Below, piece after piece: positions 1,221-40,472 of a stretch of 48,336 nucleotides of DNA. Origin of the DNA: Guillardia theta CCMP2712 (taxonomy: Eukaryota > Protista > Cryptophyta); the NCBI RefSeq assembly GCF_000315625.1, contig NW_005434488.1, positions 43,827 to 92,162 of the forward strand, given 5' to 3'. The notes under the pieces are model-generated. The model was not told the DNA's origin and did not search any database. It saw nothing but the letters and a program-made list of their open reading frames with translations. Position numbers and translations under genes: made by a program. Position 1 is the stretch's first letter. Each line of letters begins with the position of its first letter.

Positions 1221-1644
1221 ATGAAACCGATAAACAATCAAGAAAACACAGGCCAGATTAGGACATGTTCCTGATCGCAACATGATCTGGTTGTTGTGAG
1301 CACTGTCCTATAGCTATCTACCAGCGAACTGCAGTGCAAGCCCCCTGTTTCTCTCCTCAACGTTGTGAGCTAAGGATCATCCCTACTCGTCCGATCCCTC
1401 CCTCCTCTCCTCTTCCACTCTCCATCCCTACGCTGCTTCCTCTCTCCATCCCTACGCTGCGTCCTCCCTTCCCACCTCCACCCTTGCTGTTTTCATCCTT
1501 TCTCTTCCTCGGTCATTTTCATAGAAAGGAGTATGAGGCAATTTCTGCCTTTAGAAGCTTGTGAATGATGTGATGAGGCGGACTCGTAGGCTTGTAGTAT
1601 TCTTTCGTAGCTTTCCTAGTCAAGCGACACGTTTGACGGGCAGC

Positions 1645-4600
1645 ATGGGGAAGTTGAAGCTTGTGGGGCTCTGCTGCTCTTGAGCCCCTCCAGCTTCTTG
1701 ACGAGCGCTGCTAGCTGCGAGCCTCCTCCTTCACACGCCTTTTGGGAGGGAAACCTCTCTTCCTCCGCTACCTGCACATGGCTCTGCTTGCCTGGCTTCA
1801 CTGAGCTCAACGGTTCTTGCCTGCCATGTCTCCCCTGCGGCTCCTCAAGTCACAGCCCATGCTGGTACCCCACACGAGAAGTGCAGACTGACATGGGTAG
1901 CTCGTCTTGCGTGCCAACCTGCGCGGACGCGTCGCTTGTCAGCACGGGAGTGTGGAGCCAGCAGAAGGACATAGTCTCCTGCCAATGCGCGAACAAGCTG
2001 GTGACTCGTTTCAGAGATCGTGTGGAATGTGCTAACTTTGGGAATGTCAACGAGCCAAACTGTGCTGGACCAAAATCCTCAGTGGAGTTCTCCTATATCA
2101 TGCAAGAGAATATGGTCGTAGATAAATCAGTTGTCACATTTGCAATTCCATATAATGGGAACATACAACTTTGTCTTGACTCGTGTAATTCTGAACCGAC
2201 TTGTCGTTGTTTCAGTATTTTCACGGATAGAAATAATGGTAGAAGGACGTGTATGTTCAGCGATTCTTCTTGCCGTGCGATGAATGTGAAGAGCTGGGAT
2301 CGTCAACCTTCTGTTCTCTACATTAAGAACGCTAGTACCTGTTCAAAGCAGTGTGACGGTTCTACTGTTTCAGTCGACAGCATTGCATACTGCCAGTGCG
2401 GTCAAGGAACTTATCTTGATGCAGCGACCGATACAGCAAGAGATTGCATAGCAAAAGATTCTTTGACCTTTCACAGCGTCATTCCTGACGTCTTTAACCA
2501 GAGCACGAGCCTTGCAATGTGTGCGACTACTGCTAGAAGTCAAAAGCGAGAATCATTCTGCTTCAGCGCCTCCACCAGAGCCTGTTATTCTCGAACGGAT
2601 TCATCTAGCGTTTGCTCGAGGGATAGTTGGCAAGGGCATGAAGTGAGTAGGAGGTTCTCGCTTTATCTTACTCCGCTTCCATGGGACGAGGCAGAAGCTT
2701 TTTGCAACAGTCACGGGGGTCATCTTTCCTCTATCACCAACCAGAAGGACAAGTTGCTGATGGAGGGGCTAGTGCAGGGCATAGAGAACGTGTGGATAGG
2801 ACTGAACTTGGATTCTCATCATGCAGATAGCAATGGATCTGACATCCGTTGGTCCGATGGCATGTTTCTCAGCAGTTTCAATCAACTCTTCCGTGAAATT
2901 CCTCGATCTGGATGCGTTGCAATGCGTTCCTTGTCATCGACAGCTGCTTTCCCGGCCTTTGCTTGTGATCGTTCGTTTGCTTTCTCATGCTCTTACATGG
3001 TGGATGATATCATCAAGATAGAGCAAGACCTCCAATGTTACTCCACTTCTTCTGTTTGTCGCGTTTGTCGCAACTTCAACGAGTCGATTGGACCTCATTT
3101 TGTTGTTGGAGTCGGAGACGTAAAGACGCGATGGTGCCCGGTTAGTTGTGAGTCGAGTTACGTGGACTCTTACACCTTGCATGGATGTAATGGGGACAAC
3201 AGTAATGCTACTTGCTCAAAGGCGAAAGCTTGCAGAACTTTCATGGAAAACGGAACAGTAGAATGTGATAGAAAATATTTGCAATGCAGCAAATTTGAAA
3301 TTCGCGGCGAATTTGAAATTCACTACTATTCCTTGGCTGTCTGGCTTTTGGGGCTTGGACTACCCTCAATGCTTGCTACAATATTCTTGTTTTTCTCAAT
3401 GGTTTACTATCCATCAGTTTGGACTACGAAGGATAAGAAAAGGCATTGTGTGTCCTGCGGTACTTCACTTTGCTTCACGTGCTACATGAATACAGCAGAA
3501 GAGACCCCTCCATCTCCTGAGAATCAGACGGTAGAAGTGATTATGCAAGGTTTCGTGATGTTGCAAGCTAAGTGTTCTTGGAGAAAAAGTCTGATTTGCT
3601 TGACCTGCAATGAAAACAGACCCTCTCAATGCGATCAAGTCTGTGCTCGATACGGCAGACGGGTAAGGCAGTGCAATGCCATGGAAGACAAGAAGTTTCA
3701 TTCATTACCGGACGCATCACTCAAATCGCTTGTTGTCAGTATCAAGAATGCGTTTTTATTGAAATACGATTTACGAATACAAGTTTGCTTCTCGATTCTC
3801 CTCATCTCTGTGATACTTTTCTTGGCAGTCTATAGTGAAATGTCACGAAATCATTCTCGGATTACAGAAAATGACGCGCTCGCAATCTCTCTCATAACCC
3901 CGTTGGTTTCACTACCTGTGTCTTGTCTTGCTGTCGTTTGCTTTTGCATGATCGTAGCAGAGCTGGAGAAGTCGCTTTGTTGCGTCTGTTCAAACGATTT
4001 CTCATGTCCGAGCTGCCACATGAGAAAGTTTAACAAGCTTATGGACAAGTCTCCCAGAGAGCTTCAAAGGTTGCGAGGAGAACGACCCGGTCGCTTCATC
4101 TACGTGAGGGACAACAAGCCGTGCAGCAGAGTTGATCTGAATGATTCGATATCCGGTAGGATAGTTCTCAAAGTGCGTCATATGGAAGAAGAGGGGAGGC
4201 CCCAGCCCCTCTACTACCTCAAGTCTGATGTTTCCTTTGCTTGGCTTCATCTCGACAACACATCAGGAGATTTGACGTTCGACACCTCCAAGATAACTGA
4301 AGACAATCGCAAGACTTCGACCATCACGTTAGTCATCGCAGCATTCAACACGTCTGGTTTCTGTACTACGAAGATCCAAGTATTCCTCGACGCTTGTCCT
4401 TCTCCTCCATCAAATCTCAGATACCCTCAATGCGACGGCTACTTGCTGATGCTTGAATCGCTCCTCTACAAGCAATGCTACATCACAGGAATGCTGCAGT
4501 GCTCGTGGTGTAGACAAGATGCGTCAGAACAGATGATATGTCAAACTTGTATCAACGAAGGCAAACGATCGCCTCTTGTCTGTCAGCAATGTTTTCACGG

Positions 4601-7600
4601 GTACGAGTTTCGACAAGTTTCGCATCATCGTCTAGGGCATGAGTTTGTTAGACGAGCACCGGCACAAGTAGGATCATACGTTCAACGAGCAGATGGGGGA
4701 ATCGAAAAGATTGAAGAGATGTCTACAGGAATACTCGAAAACGAACCTTTCATACCCCTTGACCTGTTCTATTTCCCTGTACCCCTCTTTTTTCTTGCCA
4801 ACGGTTTTTACATCTCAGTCAGTATTGTGATTTTGGGGTTTTCAGGATTAGCTATCCTTTTAACTTCGATTTTTGGTTTATATTTTGCTTATGGTGCATC
4901 CGTGGTAGTCTTTTGGCGGGAGGAGCGCAATGTGAGGAGATATAGATACTATAAGACATCACGTCGAGGGTCAGACGTCGTCAGAGATCTCCAAGAGAGC
5001 GATTATCCTTCCTTTCAAGTGTTGGGAACAGATTCGATCCCGATGCATACACACGTGGAGGCATCGGCAAGGCTGGAGGAACATAGCTTCCCTCCTGCTC
5101 GTTTCCGATCTCTCAAGGTCTTGCCCAAGGGTGTCTTTCTCAACGAGGATAGCGGGACTTTGTACGGATATCCGCTTGAAGAAGGTGAGTTTGAAATACA
5201 AGTTGAAGCATACAACGAGATCGGCTCGTCCACTTGCACGTTGCTCATGAAGATCGTCGAACGCCATGCTTCAAGCGCAGTGCGTGCATGCCCCAGCGCT
5301 TTCTCAGAAGCTCCTCTAGTGTTACTCCATGAAGACAACGAGCAAGAGAGGACGATAGAGATTGAAACCTTACAGGAGGACGACTATGCGATCAGCGAAC
5401 TCAGATACTTGAAAGGACAACTGCGAGAAGGGATTGGAAACGTGTGCTCTGAAGGATCATATCAGATGCTCTCGACTCACCCGAATCTAGTGAATCTTGA
5501 TCTTGATGCTGAAACAGGAGAAGTTTCTTGTTCGCTTACCCTTCGCACAATTCTCTCCTGTTTTCCAGCCAAGTGTGAAGCGATCTTTCTGTCTGAGAAA
5601 GCCGAGGTCATCCGCAAGTCTCTCTTCCTATCCATCGCTCAAGTCTCGTCCTGTCAGCCTCTGCCCCTGGCCTCCATCCGGTTCGCGCGCTTAAGCAACG
5701 CAAACTACATGAGCAGCATGCGGCTGCCAGACTTCCCGCAAGTTGCGCAGGTCGAGCCCCAGCTGTTCTCCCTTAGCTCGGGTGAAGAAGTGTGTATCGC
5801 TCCCTGCCTTGTCTCTCTGCCAGCAGTCATGCGCTCGTTGACTGAGCATGTCGCGTTTCATTCCGGTCTCACCCTCGTCGTCGTCGAAGTTTTGGCAGCT
5901 CACGCGAGGACAGGACGCATGCGGGTCACGCCAGGCAGAAGCAGAGGAGGCGGGGGGCTGGAGATGGAGGTCAGCTGGGATCGAGCAGGCGAGGTGTGGG
6001 AGGAGGCAGTGATGGGGAGTGACATGTACATATACGTGACAAGCGTGTTGCCCGGCTGGACCCTGAGACCGCTGCGATCCCACGTCAATGACGAGCTAGT
6101 GGAGCAGAGGAACGCGCTTCCCCCCGGGCTGAAGCTCAGCTCGAACGGAGTCATCTACGGTAAAGCGCGGGTCTTGCAGCCTGTCGTTGGGTTCGAGTTG
6201 GGGCATGCAGCGAGTCAAGGCGAAGAGAGCAAGACCATCGCCATGACGGTGACGTCATCGGCTTCCGCGAGGTATCGAGCAATATTGAGTTCTTTCCTCT
6301 TCGCCCACCAGCTCTTCATGGCGATGTTCCAACGGAAGCACGTGCGGGCAAGGCTAGAGCTCCTCTTGGAAGCAAGATCAGCGACTAGCTTGGAGGAGCT
6401 TGACCTCGAAGAAGTTGTGCGATACTACACGTTCCCTCGCAAGAATGACATCAGGTTCTGCATCAAAATGTATGAGAGATCAGACAGGCCCGACATTTCG
6501 AGCGTGAGAATACCAGGATTCAAGGTGCATGCAGTTATTGGAAGAGGAGGGCAGGGATCGGTATACCTCTGTCAGAGAGAGCAAGGCTCCTTGGCCATGT
6601 TTGCTGTTAAGGTTTGCGACAAGCCAGACGAGCGGGAGTATCAGAACCTGAAAACCCTTGAGCAGCTCCGACATCCCAACATCGTTAAAGTGTTCGAGTG
6701 CTTGCTGCAGCCGTTCGCTATCGTCATGGAATTTGTGGAAGGAGAGTCTCTGAAGGACTTGATAGAGACTTCAGAGGAGGGGGAAGGTCGACGTCTCACT
6801 AGGGATGTGGTATATGAGATCGGTTCCCAGCTTCTCCTTGGTCTCTGCGCACTGCACAAGTTATCTATCCTGCATCGCGACCTCAAGCCGTCCAACATCA
6901 TCTGCACCTTCTCAGGTAACGACATCCAGCGAGTCACGCTGATAGACTTCGGAGCTTCGAAGCACGAGAACCTGGATCACACCATGACCTACACCGGCAA
7001 CTACATCGGTACCCTGCACTACTTCAGCCCCGAGCAGTGCAGAGGAGACTCCCAGCTCGACGCAAGAGTTGACGTGTGGTCAGCTGGGGTAGTCATCTAC
7101 GAGATGACAGCTGGGAAGAAGCCTTTCTTCTCTCACAACGTGCTCGAGCTCTTCACGGCTATTCGCAGAAAGCCGTTTGCCTACATCCCGGGCTGCGGAG
7201 CTGCGATGAACTTGTTTCTGAAGACAGCGTTGAAGAAAGAGGCGGGAGATCGATTCGAAGACGCGGAGGAGATGCTGCACATGTTCAAGCAAGTGTTTGA
7301 TGATCCCGAGAAAGCAGCTCAGACGCTTTCTGAAAGGAAAAGCACGTTCAAGGCTGAAAAAGCCGAGCCCGGGAGGAAGCGAGGGTCCAACAAGTGGGGG
7401 GTACTCGCCTTCTTTGTGAAACGTCACGTCAACCCATTAACACTCAAGTCGAAGATCGGAGACGCGTGGAACAACAACAGAGACGACGAGGCGCTGGATC
7501 TCTTGCTGGCACAGGAGCTCGAGAGCATCGACCCATATGAGGAAGCCAGCATCATGCAAGACTCGTCGCTCGGCGCCATGTTCGACCTCCGCATGCACCC

Positions 7601-8196
7601 GCAGCCGACGTTTGAGAGCTTTGTGCGTCAGATGGGGGCGTGCGACTCGTCGGAGATCAGGGTGGTGCATCTGTCCGGGCATGGGGACAGCAAGAACGGC
7701 TTCTGGTGGCTGAAAGATGGCTCTAAGTCCGAGTTCGACCTCAAGTCCCCCGAGGAAGTGGCAGACGTCATCGCTCTGCACGTGGACGGAGGCCCAACCC
7801 AGACGTCCGTCGAGTGCGTCGTACTGAACGCGTGCCAGTCCTACGGGATGGGGAGGCGCCTCTTCGAGCTGGGGGTGCGCAACGTGGTTTGCTGGGAAGG
7901 GAAGGTGAGGGACACAACGGCAATAACGTTCTCGAGGTACTTCTACGAGAGTTTAAACGAGATGGCCGGGAGGAAGGAGATAGACTATCGCAGAACCTTC
8001 GAGCGAGCTTGTCTCAGATACTCCTCCTCCTCAGAGTCTGACCCAACGAGCACAGTGAGAAGTCTAGTGAGAAACTCGAAGAGAGGGAAGTTGGATCAGA
8101 TTGTGATGATAAGCAAAGGTAACTTTGAACAAGTCTTTATGTCTCCCTGCTGACTTGTCTGCAGGCGGAGATTGTAAACGAGATCTTTCAATCTAA
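1645..8196 (+). CDS. Multi-pass receptor-like Ser/Thr kinase-CHAT protease fusion (Cys-rich, PAN x2, C-type lectin, ~5 TM, ZZ finger, He_PIG repeats, kinase, CHAT)
   Basis: Open frame 1620-8153. C-type lectin at 2646-2991 (LPWDEAEAFC...GHLSSI...VWIGL...WSDG...GCV...C...FSC). Kinase motifs GRGGQG (6540), AVK (K at 6609), HRDLKPSN (6873), DFG (6945), GTLHYFSPEQ (7008), DVWSAG. CHAT motifs VVHLSGHG (H at 7680) and VVLNACQS (C at 7833). A probable terminal intron 8119-8164 (gtaact...ctgac...tgcag) gives the end SKGGDCKRDLSI* at 8196. The start is uncertain because ATG 1645 is out of frame by one base. Confidence 0.9.
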
Positions 8197-8559
8197 TCCG
8201 CCGACGCTGGACCATATTTCAATTCGCAGTTGTTTCCTGCTGTTTGTCATATCAGATAAAATGTTTGCTCAAAAACAGCTGCCGCTCGAGGAGTTGGATC
8301 CGGCTGACATAAGTAGCTTCTCTCCCTCAGCGTCTATCTGGACTAAGTATCTCGAGGAAAATGGCTGCTGCTACTTGTAGCCGGCGCGTTCACGTTCACC
8401 GGTCCCGCTCCCCGTCAGTCTTGTAGCCCACATCATCCTCTCGAGCTCAAACAGAACTTATCAGCACAATCAGCTCTGTCATCTCCAGTCACCCGCTTTC
8501 TCTCCGAGCCCTCCATAGTAAGCTCTGGAGAAAACGCCCGCATGCCTTGGTCGAGCGCA

Positions 8560-9230
8560 GTGTTCAACTCCGCCGCGGTCTTCCGGCTTCACTGCATTGC
8601 TCAGACGGAACCTATGCGTGTCCCTTGCAGACAGATTACAACATCTCAACATGGGCTCCAAGACGCTATCAAGGAGCAAATCATTCGCTACATGCTCTCC
8701 AGCATGAGCTTGTTGTTTCCCATCATCGCTGAAGCAACACCCGAGACGCTCTGTTTCTTGTTACTCTGCTCGCAATCGCGATGCTAACATGCGATCTCAT
8801 CTCTCCCACATCTCCATAGCAAGGGACATATTCAACGAGGTCTCATGCAAGTTGGTTGCTTCATTCCTCAAGGTGCAAGCGAGCTTTTGATAATCTCTTC
8901 TGCTGCAAACCTTACTGAGACTTCAGGTATCCAGGGAATCGAATTGGTCAATCAGATACCGTTACAGCCTCTGAGCTGTTCAGTAGGAAGAGTCGAAGAA
9001 ACTTGCTGGTCAACACCTTACAAGTGTTGCACGAGATATATCAGTATCACAGCTTGAAGCAACAAAGCTATCCTGTTCTGTTGTGCAACATCATATGCTG
9101 GTCGTTGGAATCTTCATCTCGGAAAGCGAAAGTGCATGTACTTGTACTGATCATGGCTGACTTGCCGAGAGACCTTCATCCATGGATGCTTGGACTGGGG
9201 AGCGATACATTGTGGGCCGCAGTCAGATAG
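8560..9230 (+). CDS. Probable small multi-exon gene, unknown function
   Basis: Coding-like segments (LQDAIKEQIIRYMLSSMSLLFPIIAEATPETL; ARDIFNE; GASELLIISSAANLTETS) separated by short gt...ag stretches. No domain recognised; boundaries unresolved. Confidence 0.3.
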
Positions 9231-11969: not shown

Positions 11970-12330
11970 CCACACCACCCTAACCCCTGATAAAAACATG
12001 ATGACCCCATCAATATACACAACTTATTGCTACAATGTACGGGTACGTGAAGTACCACCGGTACAGACCCTTTCCTTGCGAAGCCTTTTTTTCTCTCATG
12101 CAAGGCCAGTTAAACCACCCCACCTTGACCACTCATGTCCCAGTACCCCCACCATACATTCTAAAGAGGGTTTTATTACCCACCCTTCATGAGTATCATA
12201 CACCCATCCAAAATAGCTTTGCAAGAGGGGTGTAAACGGTCACAAAAAGTACCCCCATCAACATGATACAGATGTGATGACCCCACCCTTGAATATCTGA
12301 GACTGTATTAGACCTACCCACCTCTGTGAT
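11970..12330. promoter_or_regulatory. GTACCC/CACCC motif cluster upstream of RWP-RK copy 1
   Basis: Repeated gtacccc, ccaccc, tacccacc and gggtac words in an otherwise AT-richer stretch. Regulatory role is inferred from position only. Confidence 0.4.
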
Positions 12331-13665
12331 CTCAATATATATTTTAAAAGGTAAGGGATGAAAAGAGGTGCTTTGGCCTTGATAAGACGCCTTCAGATCG
12401 ACGACGTCGGAAAAGAGAGGTTTTCAAAAATTTCCCCATGTTCCATACCGGTACTTATGCCTGGATTTTGACATGGGTACGCTAGCAATGCCTGTCAGCA
12501 ACACTGCCCAGAACTTTGGAGAGGCAGGTTCAATCCCTCCTGGTGGGGTAGGTGTAATGCTATGCAAAGTCTCGATTGTCATGAAGGTAAATCAAGGAAG
12601 GTGTGAGGGTGGCCGTCTTGAGGACTTTTGACCCTTTCAGAAAGTTCTTGGGCTAGAGGAGATTTCAGGCGCTTCTCAAGGGAATTGGGAAGGTGGGCGA
12701 AAAAAATTTATAAGTGTAAAAGTGTGGTCAGAGGGGGGATGTGGGAGGTGGGTAGTGGAACACAGCGAAATGGCGAAACGCGGGGGAGGCAGGACGAGTG
12801 ACGAGGGGAAGAAGAACATTCATAAAGCTACTTCCATGCCACATGCCGATTCGTAGAAGAAAGGAAGAGGTAGGGAGAAGAGAAGAAGGCGCAAGGGGAG
12901 CAAGAATAGCCAAGAAGTCGAGGAGCTCGAATGAGAGTCGCAAGGGAGGTCAAGGTTTGGATGAAGTGGTTAGCAGAGAGGGATAGCAGGGCCGGGCCGG
13001 GCCGAGCCGGGAAGAACATGCGGAGAAGGTTCAAGAAGAGGAAGGGGGAGGGGAAGATGTAATAGTTGAGGCGGCAGTAGCTTGTGAGCCGGGATGGAGG
13101 CCATTCAGACAGCCAGCATTGAGACATGATATGCAGATCTCAGCAGAGAGGCCGAGATTGAGAAAAAGAGAAACGGAAAAGAGGACCGGCAAACTCACAA
13201 TGTGTTCAGCTCAGCATTGTCAAGAAACGATAGATAATGAAATTGTGAAGATGGAATGAGCATAATAGCGATTTGTTGTAAGCAGAGCTAGGATTATCTG
13301 GAAGGTGGAATCTGGAAGGAATTGATGCTGTGAATGTTTTGACTAGAGTAGCTGAGATGATAGATAATGAACATGTAGCTTCTGAACCTGGATAGCTACA
13401 AGAGGGAGGAGGTTGGAAAGATGAAAAAGAGGCAAGGAGGTTGGAAAAGGAGACCATGTTTGATTGTACTCGATAACACAGCACAAGATTGGGAGCTTGC
13501 TGACATAGTTAAGGAGATTGAAGGTGTCGACAGATGGAAAAGGATTTAGCACGGAGAACAAATGAGAGAGACACACTCTGCATGAGAAGAAGACAGGGAC
13601 AGAGACAAAAGAAGAGACAGAGACAGAAACAGAAATACGCACGAAGACAAAGAAACAGATAGAAA

Positions 13666-14050
<385 letters not shown>

Positions 14051-35659: not shown

Positions 35660-36178
35660 ATGTCATCAATCACTGCTACTATGGAGCAACAGGCATCCCT
35701 GAACAAGTTCGCCAACGACATCGTCGTCGAGACACAGCAGCATGATTGTTACCTGAAAGACACCCCAAGGATGGAGGAGGAGGAAGTGGACGTGGATTAT
35801 CCGAGGCACAGCGTTCCTTTTGAAAACTGCAACCTAGAGTTCGCCATGCCTCCGCCCAGAAGGTACATGCGGTCTGAAAGCAGCTCAAGCTTGAAGTGCC
35901 TGCTGTCCAAGGAGAGGGACTTTACGAGCAGGGAGTGGAGAAAGGGGATGATGCGGTCCTCATCGGAGAGATGCCTCTCTTCCTCCGGCTCCTTCGTGCG
36001 ATCACGCAACAAGTGCTTCCAGCTTCCTTCATGGCAGGAGGCGGAGATAAGGAAGAAGCACAACATGTCGGTAGGGATGGAGCTATCGCAGTCGGACGAG
36101 GCAAAGTTGCCTGCTAGGATGATGCTGCTAGACCTGAGGAGATCAAACAGCGAGCCCTGTCTTGTTTCTCTTGACTGA
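35660..36178 (+). CDS. Small intronless protein (172 aa), paralog of 21974-22447
   Basis: Clean ATG-initiated ORF after a CT-rich leader. C-terminal motif RKKHNMSVGMELSQSDEAKLPARMMLL. Confidence 0.75.
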   Translation: MSSITATMEQQASLNKFANDIVVETQQHDCYLKDTPRMEEEEVDVDYPRHSVPFENCNLEFAMPPPRRYMRSESSSSLKCLLSKERDFTSREWRKGMMRSSSERCLSSSGSFVRSRNKCFQLPSWQEAEIRKKHNMSVGMELSQSDEAKLPARMMLLDLRRSNSEPCLVSLD

Positions 36179-36549
36179 CATGAGAGAGTTATCTGACTAC
36201 AACGTGTACAACCTTACCAGCTTGTGAGATTATTTCCATTTCAATAAAGACATTATGTTTCAGTGTATTGTTGTTTGGTACTTGTGCGCCTGCTACTGTT
36301 TGTACGGTCGAATGCATGCCGAGCATGCTTTCTGATTGTTTACATTGTTTACACATCCTTTCCTCCGAGATGGACAGCAAGTACAACTCGACCCGTCAAT
36401 ACAGGTATGGCTCCACCTTCCTCCATAAAAGGACCACCCCAAGACTGCACAACAACAGCATCACTTCGGTCCCACCCCCCAACCCCCATCCTCCTCCTCC
36501 TCCTCCACCACCTGATCGAGAGCAGACAGACGTCATGAGTCACAGCAGG

Positions 36550-39015
36550 TTCAGTTGGCTCTCGCCTCATCCCTCTCCTCCCGGGCTGCTGGGGTTCGTG
36601 GATGACTGTCTCACCATCAGAGTCCGCTGATACCGTGGCTCGGACTGCCTGAAGATGCACTTTGAGTAAACTGACTGATGATGCCATTCGGCCCGAGCCT
36701 CTGACGGGGCGGCGGCAGCGGCACGACGGTGGCCGGCGGCATACCAGCATGATGCCGTGACGGCCTTCCGCGGGGTGCTGCTACACCAGTTTGAACAGCG
36801 GTGATCAGACTGCCTTGTCCTCTCCCAGTGACTCATGCCAGCAGCTCGATCCNNNNNNNNNNNNNNNNNNNNNNNNNNNNNNNNNNNNNNNNNNNNNNNN
36901 NNNNNNNNNNNNNNNNNNNNNNNNNNNNNNNNNNNNNNNNNNNNNNNNNNNNTGCGGGGCAATGAACAGAGAAGGGACGAGAGGAAGAGAGCAGGAGGTT
37001 GAGTACGACAGGGTGAATGAAGGAAGGGGCAGAGGAGAGGGATGGAGGAGGAGAGAGTGAACGCGAGAGAGAGGGAGCGAGGTCAAGGGAGGGAGGGGGA
37101 GGGGGAGGGGGGGCCGAGAGCAGCAGAGTACGATGGAGAGAATGGAAGGGTGGACGAGGGGAGGGGAGGGAAAGTGAGGAGAGGAGAGAGGAGAGTAGGA
37201 GAGAACAAGATGGAGGAATCGAGGAAGGAGGACGGGGACAGGAGCAAAGGAGCAAGAGAAACGCTAGAAAGAGGAACAACAACACTGAGAGGAAGAGCAA
37301 GGAAAACCTTACCTGATGCAATGGCATTGCGATGAGCCAGCAGCGGAAAGCGTCCTTGAAGCGAGCATTCTCATGCTCGAAAACATGCCAACTTCCTTTC
37401 TGTATGAGAAGATCAGCAGAGGAAGAGGAGGAGAGAGGGGGAGAGGGGAGGAAGGGATTAAGCGCGAATGAGAGTAGTTCGAAGGAGATTAGAGGAGAAA
37501 GGAGACAATGGAGGAGGGAAAGGCAGGGAGGGTCAGAGTTGTGGGAGATATGAACAATCAGGAAACGAAAATTCAAAGGAGGGGGGAGAAAAACAAACAT
37601 GACAAGGAGATGTTCAGGTCCATGTCAAAGAACGAAGGAAACAGAGCAAGCAGAGAGTAAAAGAGAGCAGATGTAAGTTGGAGTGCAAGAAGGTAAGAAA
37701 GACGAACTTGGAACTGATTTAGCATAATCCCAGCAGCTACCCATGATATGCTGAGAGTCGCCGCGCTGGTGAAATATCTGCGAACAGCAAGTCAGGAAAG
37801 TCAACGATGAGCAAGATCCTGGAAAGGAGGAGGGAAGGAGTGAGGGAATGAGGTAAGTTCGAGAGCTGGAGGAGAGTTTGAACGAATACTGCGACAGAGG
37901 AAGAGGCAGAGGCAGAGGCAGAGGCAGAGGCAGAGGAAGAGAAAGAACGAGGAGGAGGAGGAGAAGGAAAGGGATTGGGGGTGGGAGGTGGGTGGAAGAA
38001 GATGAGGAGGATGATGATGAGAAAGTGAGAAACAGGCAAGCACGCAGGCAGGTAGGGCAGGGCAGGGCAGGCAGGGAGCATACCGTGATACTATGATCCA
38101 GTCTGTGAGTGTCATGCCTGGCGTGTCTTTGGGACCCTGTGCAACCAGCTAATTTGCCGGTTGTGTCAGATAAGGCGAGGAAGTGGAGGGAGAGGAGGTG
38201 GAGGGAGAGGAGGTGGAGAGAGAGGAGGTGGAGAAGAGCTGGAGGGAGAAGAAACGGAGGGAGAGGGTTGAGAGGCAGGGGAGGTCACAAGGACATGGGA
38301 GGAGGGAAATGTTAGGGAAGGTAGACAGAGAGATGAAGGAAGGAGAAATAACCTCGCAGATGGCTTGAGATAGGCTGTAGATGGAGAGAATGGAGATGTC
38401 GTTTTGAATACTCATAAGCTGCAAACCGCCAGCATCAGACATGGCGGCCGGACAATAAACAAGTCATGTTACATCAAAAGACTCGTTGTGAGGTGGTTTG
38501 ATCAGTCTGTTGATATTCACATCGTGAAAGTCGAACAGCTCACTGATATCTTGATCTTGATCTGCCATGACGCTCTGTCCACAAAGTCACACGGGGAAAG
38601 CGACGCGTTTTCATCATTCACATCAACATCCGACGCGTTCTTCTTCTGATTCTCATCTGACCTTGTGCTGTCCTCAACAGTGATGTTCTGACTCCATTTG
38701 GCTTGCAAGCAACTGGTTGAACAACCATCTCCCCTCAACACCACTCCTTGCATACTGAGAACAGCGTGCAGTCGACCGGGTATATGTAAGGCCCCTTGAC
38801 GGATCTTGGCACGGTTTGAGCTCGTTGCAAGCCGGCTTGCAGTCATTGTCCTGACATTAGGTAGACACCTCAACGCAAGACATGTGTCTGCAAACAAACA
38901 AGACACCAACACAATCATTGCGCTGAAAGATGCTCGTCTGTTCTGATCCCGGCACTGTCCCGCCGTTCTCCTCACGCTCTCACAACCGTCCTCCTTCCTA
39001 CCGCAGCTCCGCATT
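36550..39015 (-). CDS. Probable multi-exon gene of unknown function, possibly with signal peptide; spans N gap 36853-36952
   Basis: Hydrophobic SAMIVLVSCLFADTCLA near the 5' end. Splice-bounded exons DQDQDISELFDFHDVNINRLIKPPHNESFD, LMSIQNDISILSIYSLSQAICE, LVAQGPKDTPGMTLTDWIIVSR and 37313-37400. Ends uncertain; no domain recognised. Confidence 0.5.
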
Positions 39016-39599
39016 TTTGTTCCCCGAGTGCACATGATAGCAATGCAGCAGGTCTTGCTGCGATGGGGGCAAGGAAAATATTCCAGGAGCCGATTACAGA
39101 AAGGATGATGATGCTTCAATGGATTGGTTCTCCCGAGATTGTTTGAGAGTAGAAGGTAGAGAATACAATGGATGAGCGGATAGTAGAGAGTGCGCAGCAA
39201 GGGAGAAGATTCAGAGACTGCAGAACAAGGAACAAAGATCAACGAGGATGGTTCCGAGGAGCTAGGAGTAAGACTGGTATGCGCTGCGCCGACGTTGAGA
39301 TTGAGATTTTACGAGAGAAGACAACCTGTAAGAAGAGAATGTCAGGGCGACAAACAGACACTGGGAACGAGACGAGCTAGTGAAGGAAGGAGAAGCTGGA
39401 GAAGGATGTAAGGGGAGTATGAAAGAGCTAACAAAAAGAGGAGACATGAAGATAAGTCCAACAAGAGGATCAGAGAGCGATCAGCTGAAATGTAGCATGA
39501 GGAAGGGAGCTAGAGCCAAACGGCCAGGACGAGACGAAGGGAAGGCAAACGATGATAGCCAAAGCTGTATCAGAAGTAGGAGAGGCAGCAACAGGAGGA

Positions 39600-39935
39600 G
39601 GATGTAAGGGGAGGAGAAGGAAAAGCAGCAGCAGCAGCAGCAGCGGGAAGTAGAAGGGGGAGAGGAGCAGGAGCAGATTTAGGAGGAGGAGGAGGAGGAG
39701 GAGGAGGAGGAGGAGGGGGAAAAGCAGCAGCAGCAGTAGCAGCAGGAGCAGGAGCAGCAGAAATAGAAAGAAGGGCAAGAGGGGCAGGGGAGAGGAGCAG
39801 GAGCAGGAGCAGGAGCGTAAGCGTAAGCAGGAGCAGCAGCAGGAGCAGCAGCAGCAGGAAGAGCAGGAGGAGGCGGAAAAGCAGGAGGAGGAGGAGGAGG
39901 AGGAGGAGGAGGAGGAAAGGGGGGGGGGGGGGGGG
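39600..39935 (+). repeat. Compound (GCA)n/(GGA)n/(GGAGCA)n/poly-G low-complexity tract
   Basis: Seen directly. Confidence 0.9.
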
Positions 39936-40472
39936 ATCGAGCTGCAGCAAGGGATGCATGCTCAGGGGTTTCAACCCTCGTCATGTCACACGATGCAAAA
40001 TTTTAATGGTTTTTCGTTTGCTTTTCTCCATTTGTTTTTCTTAGTTTTGAAATTAAAGAACAAAATTACAAAGATGTGTCCCGAGTATTTGCAAGTAGGA
40101 GGGGGAAGGTCACGAAATCTGAGGCCGAGCAGGTGTTGCCGCTTGCTCCATGAAGACAACGAATGACACTCGTGCGATGATGATGTAGGTTTGATGATAA
40201 CAGTGATGTTTGATGATCATAGAGACGATGACACTTGTGATGAAAGGATGTAGGTTTGATGATAACAATGACATTTCCCCGTGTGATATGATGATGCATA
40301 ATTTGAACAAAAGCGAGTTAAGCTCTGTGAGAAGGAGCAAGTTTTGAAGTATGCAGTAAGTTTAAATTTAAGATAAGAATATCAAGAAATCTAGTAAACA
40401 GGTAGCCGAGCAACGCTGATCTCTCAAGGACTGGCTCGACAGATGTCGATTTCACATCAACCCCTCAAACAA

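Follow-up and report, generated by a model that had tools for sequence, protein, structure and literature searches.

A gene of the cryptophyte alga Guillardia theta CCMP2712, located in a stretch of 48,336 nucleotides (contig NW_005434488.1, positions 43,827 to 92,162 of the forward strand; referred to as the window), joins presumed extracellular modules, predicted transmembrane (TM) segments, a Ser/Thr protein kinase domain and a C-terminal CHAT domain in a single open reading frame (ORF). We propose that this gene encodes a multi-pass membrane protein of ~2,170 residues, which works as a surface-sensing receptor with a CHAT protease that is activated by clustering, and we assign this reading a probability of roughly 0.55. 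The architecture is real, occurs repeatedly and, to the extent of our search, is undescribed.

The ORF comprises 2157 codons on the + strand (window positions 1680-8153, with the stop codon at 8151-8153), and the frame is already open from position 1620. By simple arithmetic, the chance that 2157 random codons are free of stops is ~(61/64)^2157, or ~1e-45. Four Pfam families exceed their curated cut-offs in this ORF, namely Lectin_C, He_PIG, Pkinase and CHAT. Pfam, hydropathy and motifs bore out what a sequence-only reading of the window had proposed, namely one reading frame in which a C-type lectin-like domain and TM segments are combined with a Ser/Thr kinase that looks intact and, at the C-terminus, a CHAT domain of clan CD. 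Of the families expected by that reading, these four were recovered above cut-off and a fifth, PAN, gave no match. The features that carry the argument are the following:

1680-8153, + strand: ORF of 2157 codons, collinear over its whole length with a 2255-amino-acid paralogue (43% identity)
6522-7253, + strand: Hanks-type Ser/Thr protein kinase domain (Pfam Pkinase at residues 1615-1831, E 2.3e-42)
6540-6557, + strand: kinase motif, G-loop GRGGQG
6609-6611, + strand: kinase motif, Lys of AVK
6873-6896, + strand: kinase motif, HRDLKPSN
6945-6953, + strand: kinase motif, DFG
7026-7034, + strand: kinase motif, SPE
7398-8114, + strand: compact CHAT domain (caspase fold, clan CD), residues 1907-2145, identified by Pfam, an AlphaFold2 model, Foldseek and a profile match to the PDB
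7680-7682, + strand: predicted catalytic His, residue 2001, the second His of HLSGHG (7668-7685), at least 90% conserved in 43 relatives
7833-7835, + strand: predicted catalytic Cys, residue 2052, in LNAC (7824-7835), invariant in 43 relatives

Pfam places the CHAT match (PF12770) at residues 1970-2098 (E 4.9e-10, 39.8 bits against a cut-off of 24), and the scan of the alga's own genome returned the same. As the match covers only positions 124-255 of the 289 in the profile, the domain is a compact version of CHAT. The AlphaFold2 model of the tail, built with an alignment of 43 relatives (mean predicted local distance difference test, pLDDT, 82.8; predicted template modelling score 0.84), places the His after one core strand and the Cys after the next. 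When this model was searched with Foldseek, the bacterial SAVED-CHAT protein came first (8tl0, E 8.5e-11), followed by CED-3, caspases 3, 7 and 8, the metacaspase Yca1, MALT1 and separase (E 2e-4 to 2e-3), so that the caspase-like fold predicted for the C-terminal domain was recovered. A profile built from this alignment gave one strong match in the PDB, again 8TL0, the activated SAVED-CHAT filament (E 4.8e-20). In the hidden Markov model alignment to this structure, the algal His and Cys fall on a His and a Cys of the chain that are 47 residues apart, as are H375 and C422 (the chain numbering is offset by 20). A SAVED-CHAT variant with the double substitution H375A/C422A is inactive (bioRxiv 10.1101/2023.06.23.546230). 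The assignment of the His at 7680 and the Cys at 7833 to the His-Cys dyad of CHAT and clan-CD peptidases was thus correct in that both align with a dyad that has been tested by mutation. A scan with the last 278 residues against 1.84 billion representatives yielded 416 relatives with E <= 1e-3, 94 of them with E <= 1e-10; in the 43-relative alignment, an upstream Glu and the motif VVCW..V.D..A..F...FY, which is typical of CHAT, are also conserved at 90% or more. A word-indexed search with region 1900-2157 scored none of the long proteins with such a CHAT domain, although they exist, which reflects the sensitivity limit of that search. From sequence and model, the tail is a caspase-fold cysteine protease with an intact His-Cys dyad and predicted activity.

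The catalytic motif set of the kinase (G-loop, Lys, HRD..N, DFG and SPE) is complete and at the expected spacing, and a kinase with all of these motifs had been placed at the right coordinates by the sequence-only reading. Its best solved relatives are PknB, CDPK, NEK, SGK and CaMK, and no receptor-like kinase (RLK) or IRAK kinase is present among the 60 solved relatives listed. The name 'lectin receptor kinase', which had been given to the protein, therefore holds by analogy only: the kinase is not of the plant RLK/Pelle-IRAK type and the membrane part looks multi-pass instead of single-pass.

Both domains are under purifying selection. Window positions 4936-8978 have a counterpart with 93.7% identity in the environmental contig L011, and the ratio of non-synonymous to synonymous substitution rates (dN/dS) against this contig is 0.54 in the middle region, which consists of the weakly constrained linkers between the TM hairpin and the kinase, compared to 0.17 in the kinase and 0.11 in the linker plus CHAT domain. 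For the CHAT core, the ratio is 0.06, a value that rests on 2 non-synonymous and 9 synonymous changes. The combination also recurs in other environmental sequences. In 15 of the 150 best representative clusters, a kinase is found directly upstream of such a CHAT domain, separated from it by 23-183 amino acids, and P0185 is a sixteenth case by Pfam. The environmental protein P0001 (1809 amino acids) has the order Cys-rich/PAN-like, TM, He_PIG, kinase and CHAT, here without a lectin match. Many other clusters carry Roc-COR, with or without TIR, SPRY or leucine-rich repeats (LRR) ahead of the same CHAT tail, and some relatives possess eukaryotic-looking RING, ubiquitin, FYRN or Cbl_N2 domains. 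The contigs of the eukaryote-like relatives look eukaryotic as well, with a single large ORF among small unannotated ones. A profile search directed at short relatives gave 9 matches, none of which carried the name of a taxon. Due to the observation that the same tail follows a kinase, Roc-COR or, as described below, LRR-Roc-COR-kinase, it fits an output module on signalling scaffolds.

The window gene is not a singleton in the G. theta genome. In a scan of 87,145,349 bases on 669 contigs, we found three full-length collinear copies, which form a small family: the window gene and one copy each on the contigs C37 and C7. The C37 copy (L007 1989-8753) is the paralogue of 2255 amino acids with 43% identity; its collinearity with the window gene begins at the first Cys-rich module and extends as far as the CHAT tail. 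It carries Lectin_C, He_PIG, Pkinase and CHAT and also possesses an in-frame Met and a signal peptide. The C7 copy has Lectin_C, Pkinase and CHAT and shows one frame break near residue 1395. The genome contains at least 10 CHAT loci in total, three to four of which are full-length and canonical, and further CHAT genes are located on C21, C8, C79 and C55. On C19 (L009 2432-7069), a He_PIG protein without a kinase ends in the same CHAT tail; C23 (L010 1625-9100, minus strand) encodes an LRRK-like LRR-Roc-COR-kinase protein of 2492 amino acids with the same compact CHAT-like tail at its end; and on C4 (L013 1096-5196, minus strand), a related CHAT domain stands at the N-terminus of an ankyrin-repeat protein. 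Genes in the G. theta genome usually have several introns. The window gene (1680-8153) and its C37 paralogue (L007 1989-8753) have 6.5-6.8 kb of coding sequence with no intron sign. Introns hidden in frame were considered for the window gene and rejected: the ORF is collinear with its two paralogues and with L011, and its indels against the latter are 3-base except for two of a single base. The intron-free coding regions may hint at a retro-copied or transferred origin.

The CHAT tail has many relatives in bacteria. When 185,579 species genomes were scanned by motif on the basis of a 9-sequence core alignment, at least 493 loci with the motif [IV][ED]C..LNAC and ~26-38% identity were obtained, the best of which are mostly from filamentous cyanobacteria. 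In the 80 bacterial loci examined, CHAT is usually N-terminal, and none of these 80 has a kinase in the same ORF. Architectures sampled among them include CHAT-NACHT-associated domain-WD40, CHAT-nSTAND1-WD40, CHAT-TIR-AAA_35, CHAT-AAA_35 and EAD1-CHAT, and one locus (L064) has CHAT-SIR2-NB-ARC-FGE-sulfatase. By their domain content, the sampled proteins are NLR-like (STAND) conflict proteins of multicellular bacteria, with CHAT as the predicted N-terminal effector. Pfam detected no STAND NTPase or SAVED family in the algal ORF, and the effector module alone is shared. Judged by sequence, the algal tail is a homologue of an immune effector protease from bacteria that becomes active when its sensor drives oligomerisation. 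In the case of SAVED-CHAT, a filament induced by cA3 switches on the CHAT domain, which then cleaves one partner, PCaspase (bioRxiv 10.1101/2023.06.23.546230).

The part of the protein ahead of the kinase contains the following features:

1645-1715, + strand: candidate start ATG (1645-1647) with a hydrophobic, signal-peptide-like stretch; in the assembly, ATG and ORF are in different frames
1716-2039, + strand: Cys-rich N-terminal module, residues 13-120, presumed extracellular; Cys pattern kept in the paralogue, no Pfam match
2085-2336, + strand: PAN/apple-like module 1, residues 136-219, fold match of a low-confidence model
2508-2595, + strand: second PAN-like stretch; Cys conserved among the paralogues, no Pfam match and no confident fold
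2673-2990, + strand: C-type lectin-like domain (CTLD), residues 332-437, Pfam Lectin_C (PF00059), E 6.6e-9, 36.9 bits against a cut-off of 22.6
3333-3401, + strand: predicted TM helix 1, Kyte-Doolittle peak 2.04; aligned paralogue segment hydrophobic
3447-3659, + strand: loop with CxxC pairs (residues 590, 598 and 640), zinc-ribbon-like; faint FYVE/IBR and Zn_ribbon matches, all below cut-off
3777-3959, + strand: predicted TM helices 2 and 3, residues 700-718 and 742-760, Kyte-Doolittle peaks 2.59 and 2.61; conserved in the paralogue
3978-4649, + strand: CxxC clusters (residues 767/776 and 941/954/968) and a stretch that would be Ig-like, of He_PIG type; highly conserved in the paralogue
4764-4916, + strand: hydrophobic stretch of ~50 amino acids, residues 1029-1079, interpreted as a hairpin of two helices (TM4-5); two hydrophobic segments at this place in the paralogue
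5121-5234, + strand: He_PIG Ig-like domain, residues 1148-1185, Pfam He_PIG E 3e-7, in two stretches

The first 200 amino acids of the ORF contain 19 Cys residues. For the ectodomain, an AlphaFold2 model could be built from a shallow alignment of 4 sequences (mean pLDDT 46), in which only the first PAN-like part is usable. In this part (residues 136-219, model residues 17-100; pLDDT 58-77), VIA-align matched ~20 PAN/apple structures with Z scores of 7.9-5.0, which the tool's own note calls middling as they are under 8, and root mean square deviations of 2.6-3.7 over 69-80 residues. Among these matches are the apple domains of kallikrein and factor XI, plasminogen, Toxoplasma MIC4, a Sarcocystis lectin, a plant S-locus receptor kinase (SRK, 5gyy) and HGF. 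In the Atlas embedding, the neighbours of the module are PAN clusters at 0.85, a weak lead, and Pfam gave no match to the PAN family even for the isolated N-terminal piece at E <= 10. Two PAN-like modules had been proposed by the sequence-only reading; the first has modest fold-level support and is plausible by its model, whereas the second (2508-2595) found support neither in Pfam nor in the fold. The Lectin_C match is above cut-off in the C37 and C7 paralogues, too.

Hydropathy indicates TM-like segments at residues 552-570, 700-718 and 742-760 in addition to the ~50-residue stretch at 1029-1079, giving four to five segments, and the aligned place in the paralogue is hydrophobic for every one of them. 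The CxxC pairs after TM1 and TM3, together with a C-x2-C ... C-x2-C ... C-x2-C ... H-x3-H pattern at residues 941-988, which resembles a ZZ finger and is highly conserved in the paralogue, suggest zinc-binding and hence cytosolic loops. The isolated loop and middle pieces had no Pfam match to the ZZ family at E <= 10, only sub-threshold FYVE/IBR matches, and in the Atlas embedding the ZZ-like stretch fell among generic zinc-finger clusters with low recognition, a result we did not use as evidence. A protein with five passes, in which the long hydrophobic stretch forms a hairpin and the Cys-rich, PAN and CTLD part lies outside given a signal peptide, would fit this pattern. In an alternative model with three passes, residues 761-1028 would be outside. 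The kinase and CHAT domains are predicted to be cytosolic in both models.

Outside the coding sequence, a CT-rich stretch is found upstream of the gene (window 1360-1500) with a direct repeat of ~17 bases (ctccatccctacgctgc) at ~1421 and ~1447, and a long CT/CCT-rich tract likewise precedes the C37 paralogue (L007 8840-8960, minus strand). Elsewhere in the window, strand asymmetry is strong at 12001-14000 and 36001-40000, with a GC skew of +0.26 to +0.33 and an AT skew of +0.28 to +0.29 in 2-kb windows.

We propose that the protein could work as follows. The N-terminal 550 residues, with the Cys-rich, PAN/apple-like and CTLD parts, would face outward and bind a protein or glycan ligand, and the cytosolic part would comprise the zinc-finger-like CxxC clusters, the He_PIG repeats, the complete Hanks kinase and the terminal CHAT protease. 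Ligand-driven clustering of the receptor would activate the kinases in trans and, at the same time, gather the CHAT tails, so that induced proximity or oligomerisation could turn the protease on, which is the way in which initiator caspases, MALT1 and the SAVED-CHAT filament are activated. An extra licensing step for the protease might be added by phosphorylation. Once activated, the protease may cut downstream proteins, or else the receptor that carries it, to a limited extent, and the further CHAT genes of the genome could encode partners or substrates in a protease cascade. The likeliest setting would be the recognition of non-self at the cell surface, such as a pathogen, prey or partner, with an output of the stress or cell-death type. 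A role in immunity or programmed cell death, as the sequence-only reading had envisaged, is suggested only by analogy with the roles of the bacterial CHAT relatives. More tentatively, one might speculate that the protein is a eukaryotic surface receptor carrying its own protease, in which one polypeptide would act as 'death receptor plus initiator caspase' with the kinase as a gate and a CHAT domain derived from a bacterial NLR-like effector. Such a receptor would connect surface recognition directly to proteolytic signalling or programmed cell death in cryptophytes and other protists.

Alternatively, the CHAT tail might be a self-directed regulatory protease, which cuts the cytosolic linkers of the receptor and frees the kinase or fragments with Ig or zinc-finger modules as the signal. 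The intact dyad and the fold apply equally to such a function, the long linkers between the TM hairpin and the kinase are the weakly constrained part of the protein (dN/dS 0.54), the CHAT domain is in cis with everything that would need cutting, and activated SAVED-CHAT cleaves one specific partner and does not cleave broadly. However, the bacterial module is a terminal effector of NLR-like proteins and not an autoprocessing domain, and a generic output is suggested by the presence of the same tail behind unrelated scaffolds (Roc-COR, RING, ubiquitin), which makes self-cutting rather unlikely.

A number of observations weigh against the clustering-activated receptor that we favour, and some of them bear on whether the window copy is made as one functional protein at all. 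At the 5' end, the feature described by the sequence-only reading began at position 1645, but the ATG there, the only one nearby, is not in the frame of the ORF as assembled, and for this reason the signal peptide of the window copy is not secured. The open frame upstream of 1680 reads ...GALLLLSPSSFLTSAAS ahead of the first Cys and resembles a typical signal-peptide core; the first in-frame Met, residue 72, is located downstream of this signal-like stretch. One extra G in the GGGG run at 1665-1668 would bring the ATG into frame and give a signal peptide like that of the C37 copy. The mismatch between ATG and ORF at 1645-1720 may be explained by an error in the assembly, by a true frameshift or by an unusual start; when the 5' end was searched with either four or five G in the metagenome scan, there was no match. 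Transcript support is thin as well: the only run on record as RNA, of which a 6% sample was taken, gave 9 reads scattered from 3100 to 8290. The gene is otherwise held by 2011 contigs of unknown kind, which are collinear with the genome and have no skips of their own. The reads were compared over window 2300-8290, a stretch that ends short of the 5' end, and two joints listed in this comparison stem from other contigs that match only ~20 bases. In L011, a 1-base deletion at window position 7286 (L011 2591), between the kinase and the CHAT domain, is either an assembly error or a real split, and there is a 1-base insertion at window position 8145 (L011 3449), just before the stop; a prokaryotic gene caller split the L011 gene into products of 906 and 321 amino acids (P0121). 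The other indels in the coding sequence are all 3-base. Because constraint downstream is strong, we read the two single-base indels as assembly errors or very recent damage, and a real split in the relative is possible.

Further points concern the parts of the protein. Ca-dependent carbohydrate binding of C-type lectins is marked by an EPN or QPD motif plus WND. On reading the three paralogues by eye, we found neither the EPN/QPD nor the WND sugar and Ca motifs in the CTLD of any of them, and the positions of the sugar motif hold residues of the EIP, LEP or TFR type. Glycan binding is therefore not indicated by the sequence, and the suggestion that the receptor 'senses a glycan' is not supported. 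It is also unusual for Ig-like domains to lie on the cytosolic side, where we place them, and the TM passes cannot be counted with certainty. Finally, a homodimer prediction for the CHAT tail scored 0.00, which is informative neither for nor against binding.

One way to account for several of these points is that the window copy is a decaying or silent paralogue, or that its products are made separately, with an internal start giving, for instance, a kinase-CHAT protein. The out-of-frame ATG with the first in-frame Met past the signal-like stretch, the very low RNA read support, the single-base indels in the near-identical L011 and the frame break in the C7 paralogue would all agree with this. 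On the other hand, 2157 codons are free of stops, dN/dS is well below 1 in the kinase and CHAT domains, the indels against L011 are 3-base apart from the two single-base ones, and along its entire length the gene is collinear with an intact paralogue in which a Met and a signal peptide are present. We hence regard the loss of a functional full-length product as doubtful. Least probable is that the protein is no plasma-membrane sensor but an inner-membrane resident or an adhesion or scaffold protein with CHAT mainly as an oligomerisation or docking module, which would suit the multi-pass topology, the cytosolic Ig-like and zinc-finger-like modules unlike those of classical receptors and the CTLD without sugar-binding motifs, as the invariant Cys and near-invariant His in 43 relatives and the core dN/dS of 0.06 point to retained catalysis, and as the signal peptide of the paralogue precedes Cys-rich PAN and CTLD modules, which are typically seen in extracellular proteins.

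If the clustering-activated receptor is correct, what would be new is that a eukaryotic transmembrane protein combines a kinase with a CHAT protease in a single chain. Sensor-fused CHAT proteases as such are known from bacteria, where they include Craspase, SAVED-CHAT, gasdermin-activating proteases and NLR-like proteins. We searched the literature on CHAT domains in connection with Guillardia, eukaryotic kinases, ROCO/LRRK proteins and caspase-like proteases of cryptophytes and haptophytes and did not find the architecture described, in a coverage that leaves out most subscription journals; the statement of the sequence-only reading that no eukaryotic receptor of this kind is known thus agrees with our search. 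No paper linking ROCO proteins and CHAT domains was found either. In one passage of PMC8455989, phytoplankton are described as having no caspases and the molecular parts of their cell-death programmes as largely unknown. A receptor-protease of the proposed type could, if true, account for part of the caspase-like activity that has been reported in caspase-less phytoplankton. The gene family, small and with ROCO-CHAT relatives in an alga that is cultured and sequenced, provides a candidate for a direct link from surface sensing to proteolysis and a testable entry point, and it would be a case in which an immune effector module of bacteria has been rewired to the signalling scaffolds of eukaryotes.

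Several known systems share some of these traits. Plant lectin receptor kinases of the G-type/S-locus and C-type classes follow the same logic, in which extracellular lectin-type and PAN/apple domains are connected via a membrane anchor to a cytosolic Ser/Thr kinase. They differ in that they have a kinase of the RLK/Pelle-IRAK type, a single TM helix and no protease domain, so that the resemblance is one of analogy and not of membership. The activation of MALT1 and initiator caspases by recruitment into oligomers is established. Both share the caspase fold with the algal CHAT domain, with a similarity at the level of the fold (8-14% identity, different clan-CD families), and MALT1 also combines Ig-like domains and a caspase-fold protease in one polypeptide, as does the algal protein; in contrast to the latter, they have no kinase and no membrane part or ectodomain.

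The closest solved structure by profile and fold is SAVED-CHAT from the type III-B CRISPR/CBASS system of Haliangium ochraceum (8TL0), with which the dyad aligns. In both proteins, a compact CHAT domain is joined to a sensor or a presumed sensor, and SAVED-CHAT is activated by sensor-driven oligomerisation and cleaves a specific partner. SAVED-CHAT is bacterial and soluble, with a SAVED domain that binds cyclic oligoadenylates N-terminal to CHAT, and it contains no kinase, membrane part or extracellular domains. The bacterial STAND/NLR-like CHAT proteins, including those with lectin-fold 'antigen sensors' diversified by diversity-generating retroelements, have the same compact CHAT subtype and the sensor in one polypeptide. 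Lectin-fold sensors joined to CHAT, TIR or kinase domains have been described as putative antigen sensors in multicellular bacteria (PMC10907252), and the FGE-sulfatase sensor of the bacterial CHAT protein L064, which has a C-type lectin fold, is a further likeness to the algal protein. Whereas CHAT is N-terminal in these cytosolic proteins and accompanied by an NTPase, it is C-terminal in the algal protein, where it stands behind a kinase in a eukaryotic transmembrane protein. The ROCO/LRRK-type proteins of G. theta (C23) and of uncultured organisms end in the same tail and differ as cytosolic GTPase scaffolds without ectodomains. As judged from these domain orders, the CHAT module has been attached behind both kinases and ROCO GTPases in protists.

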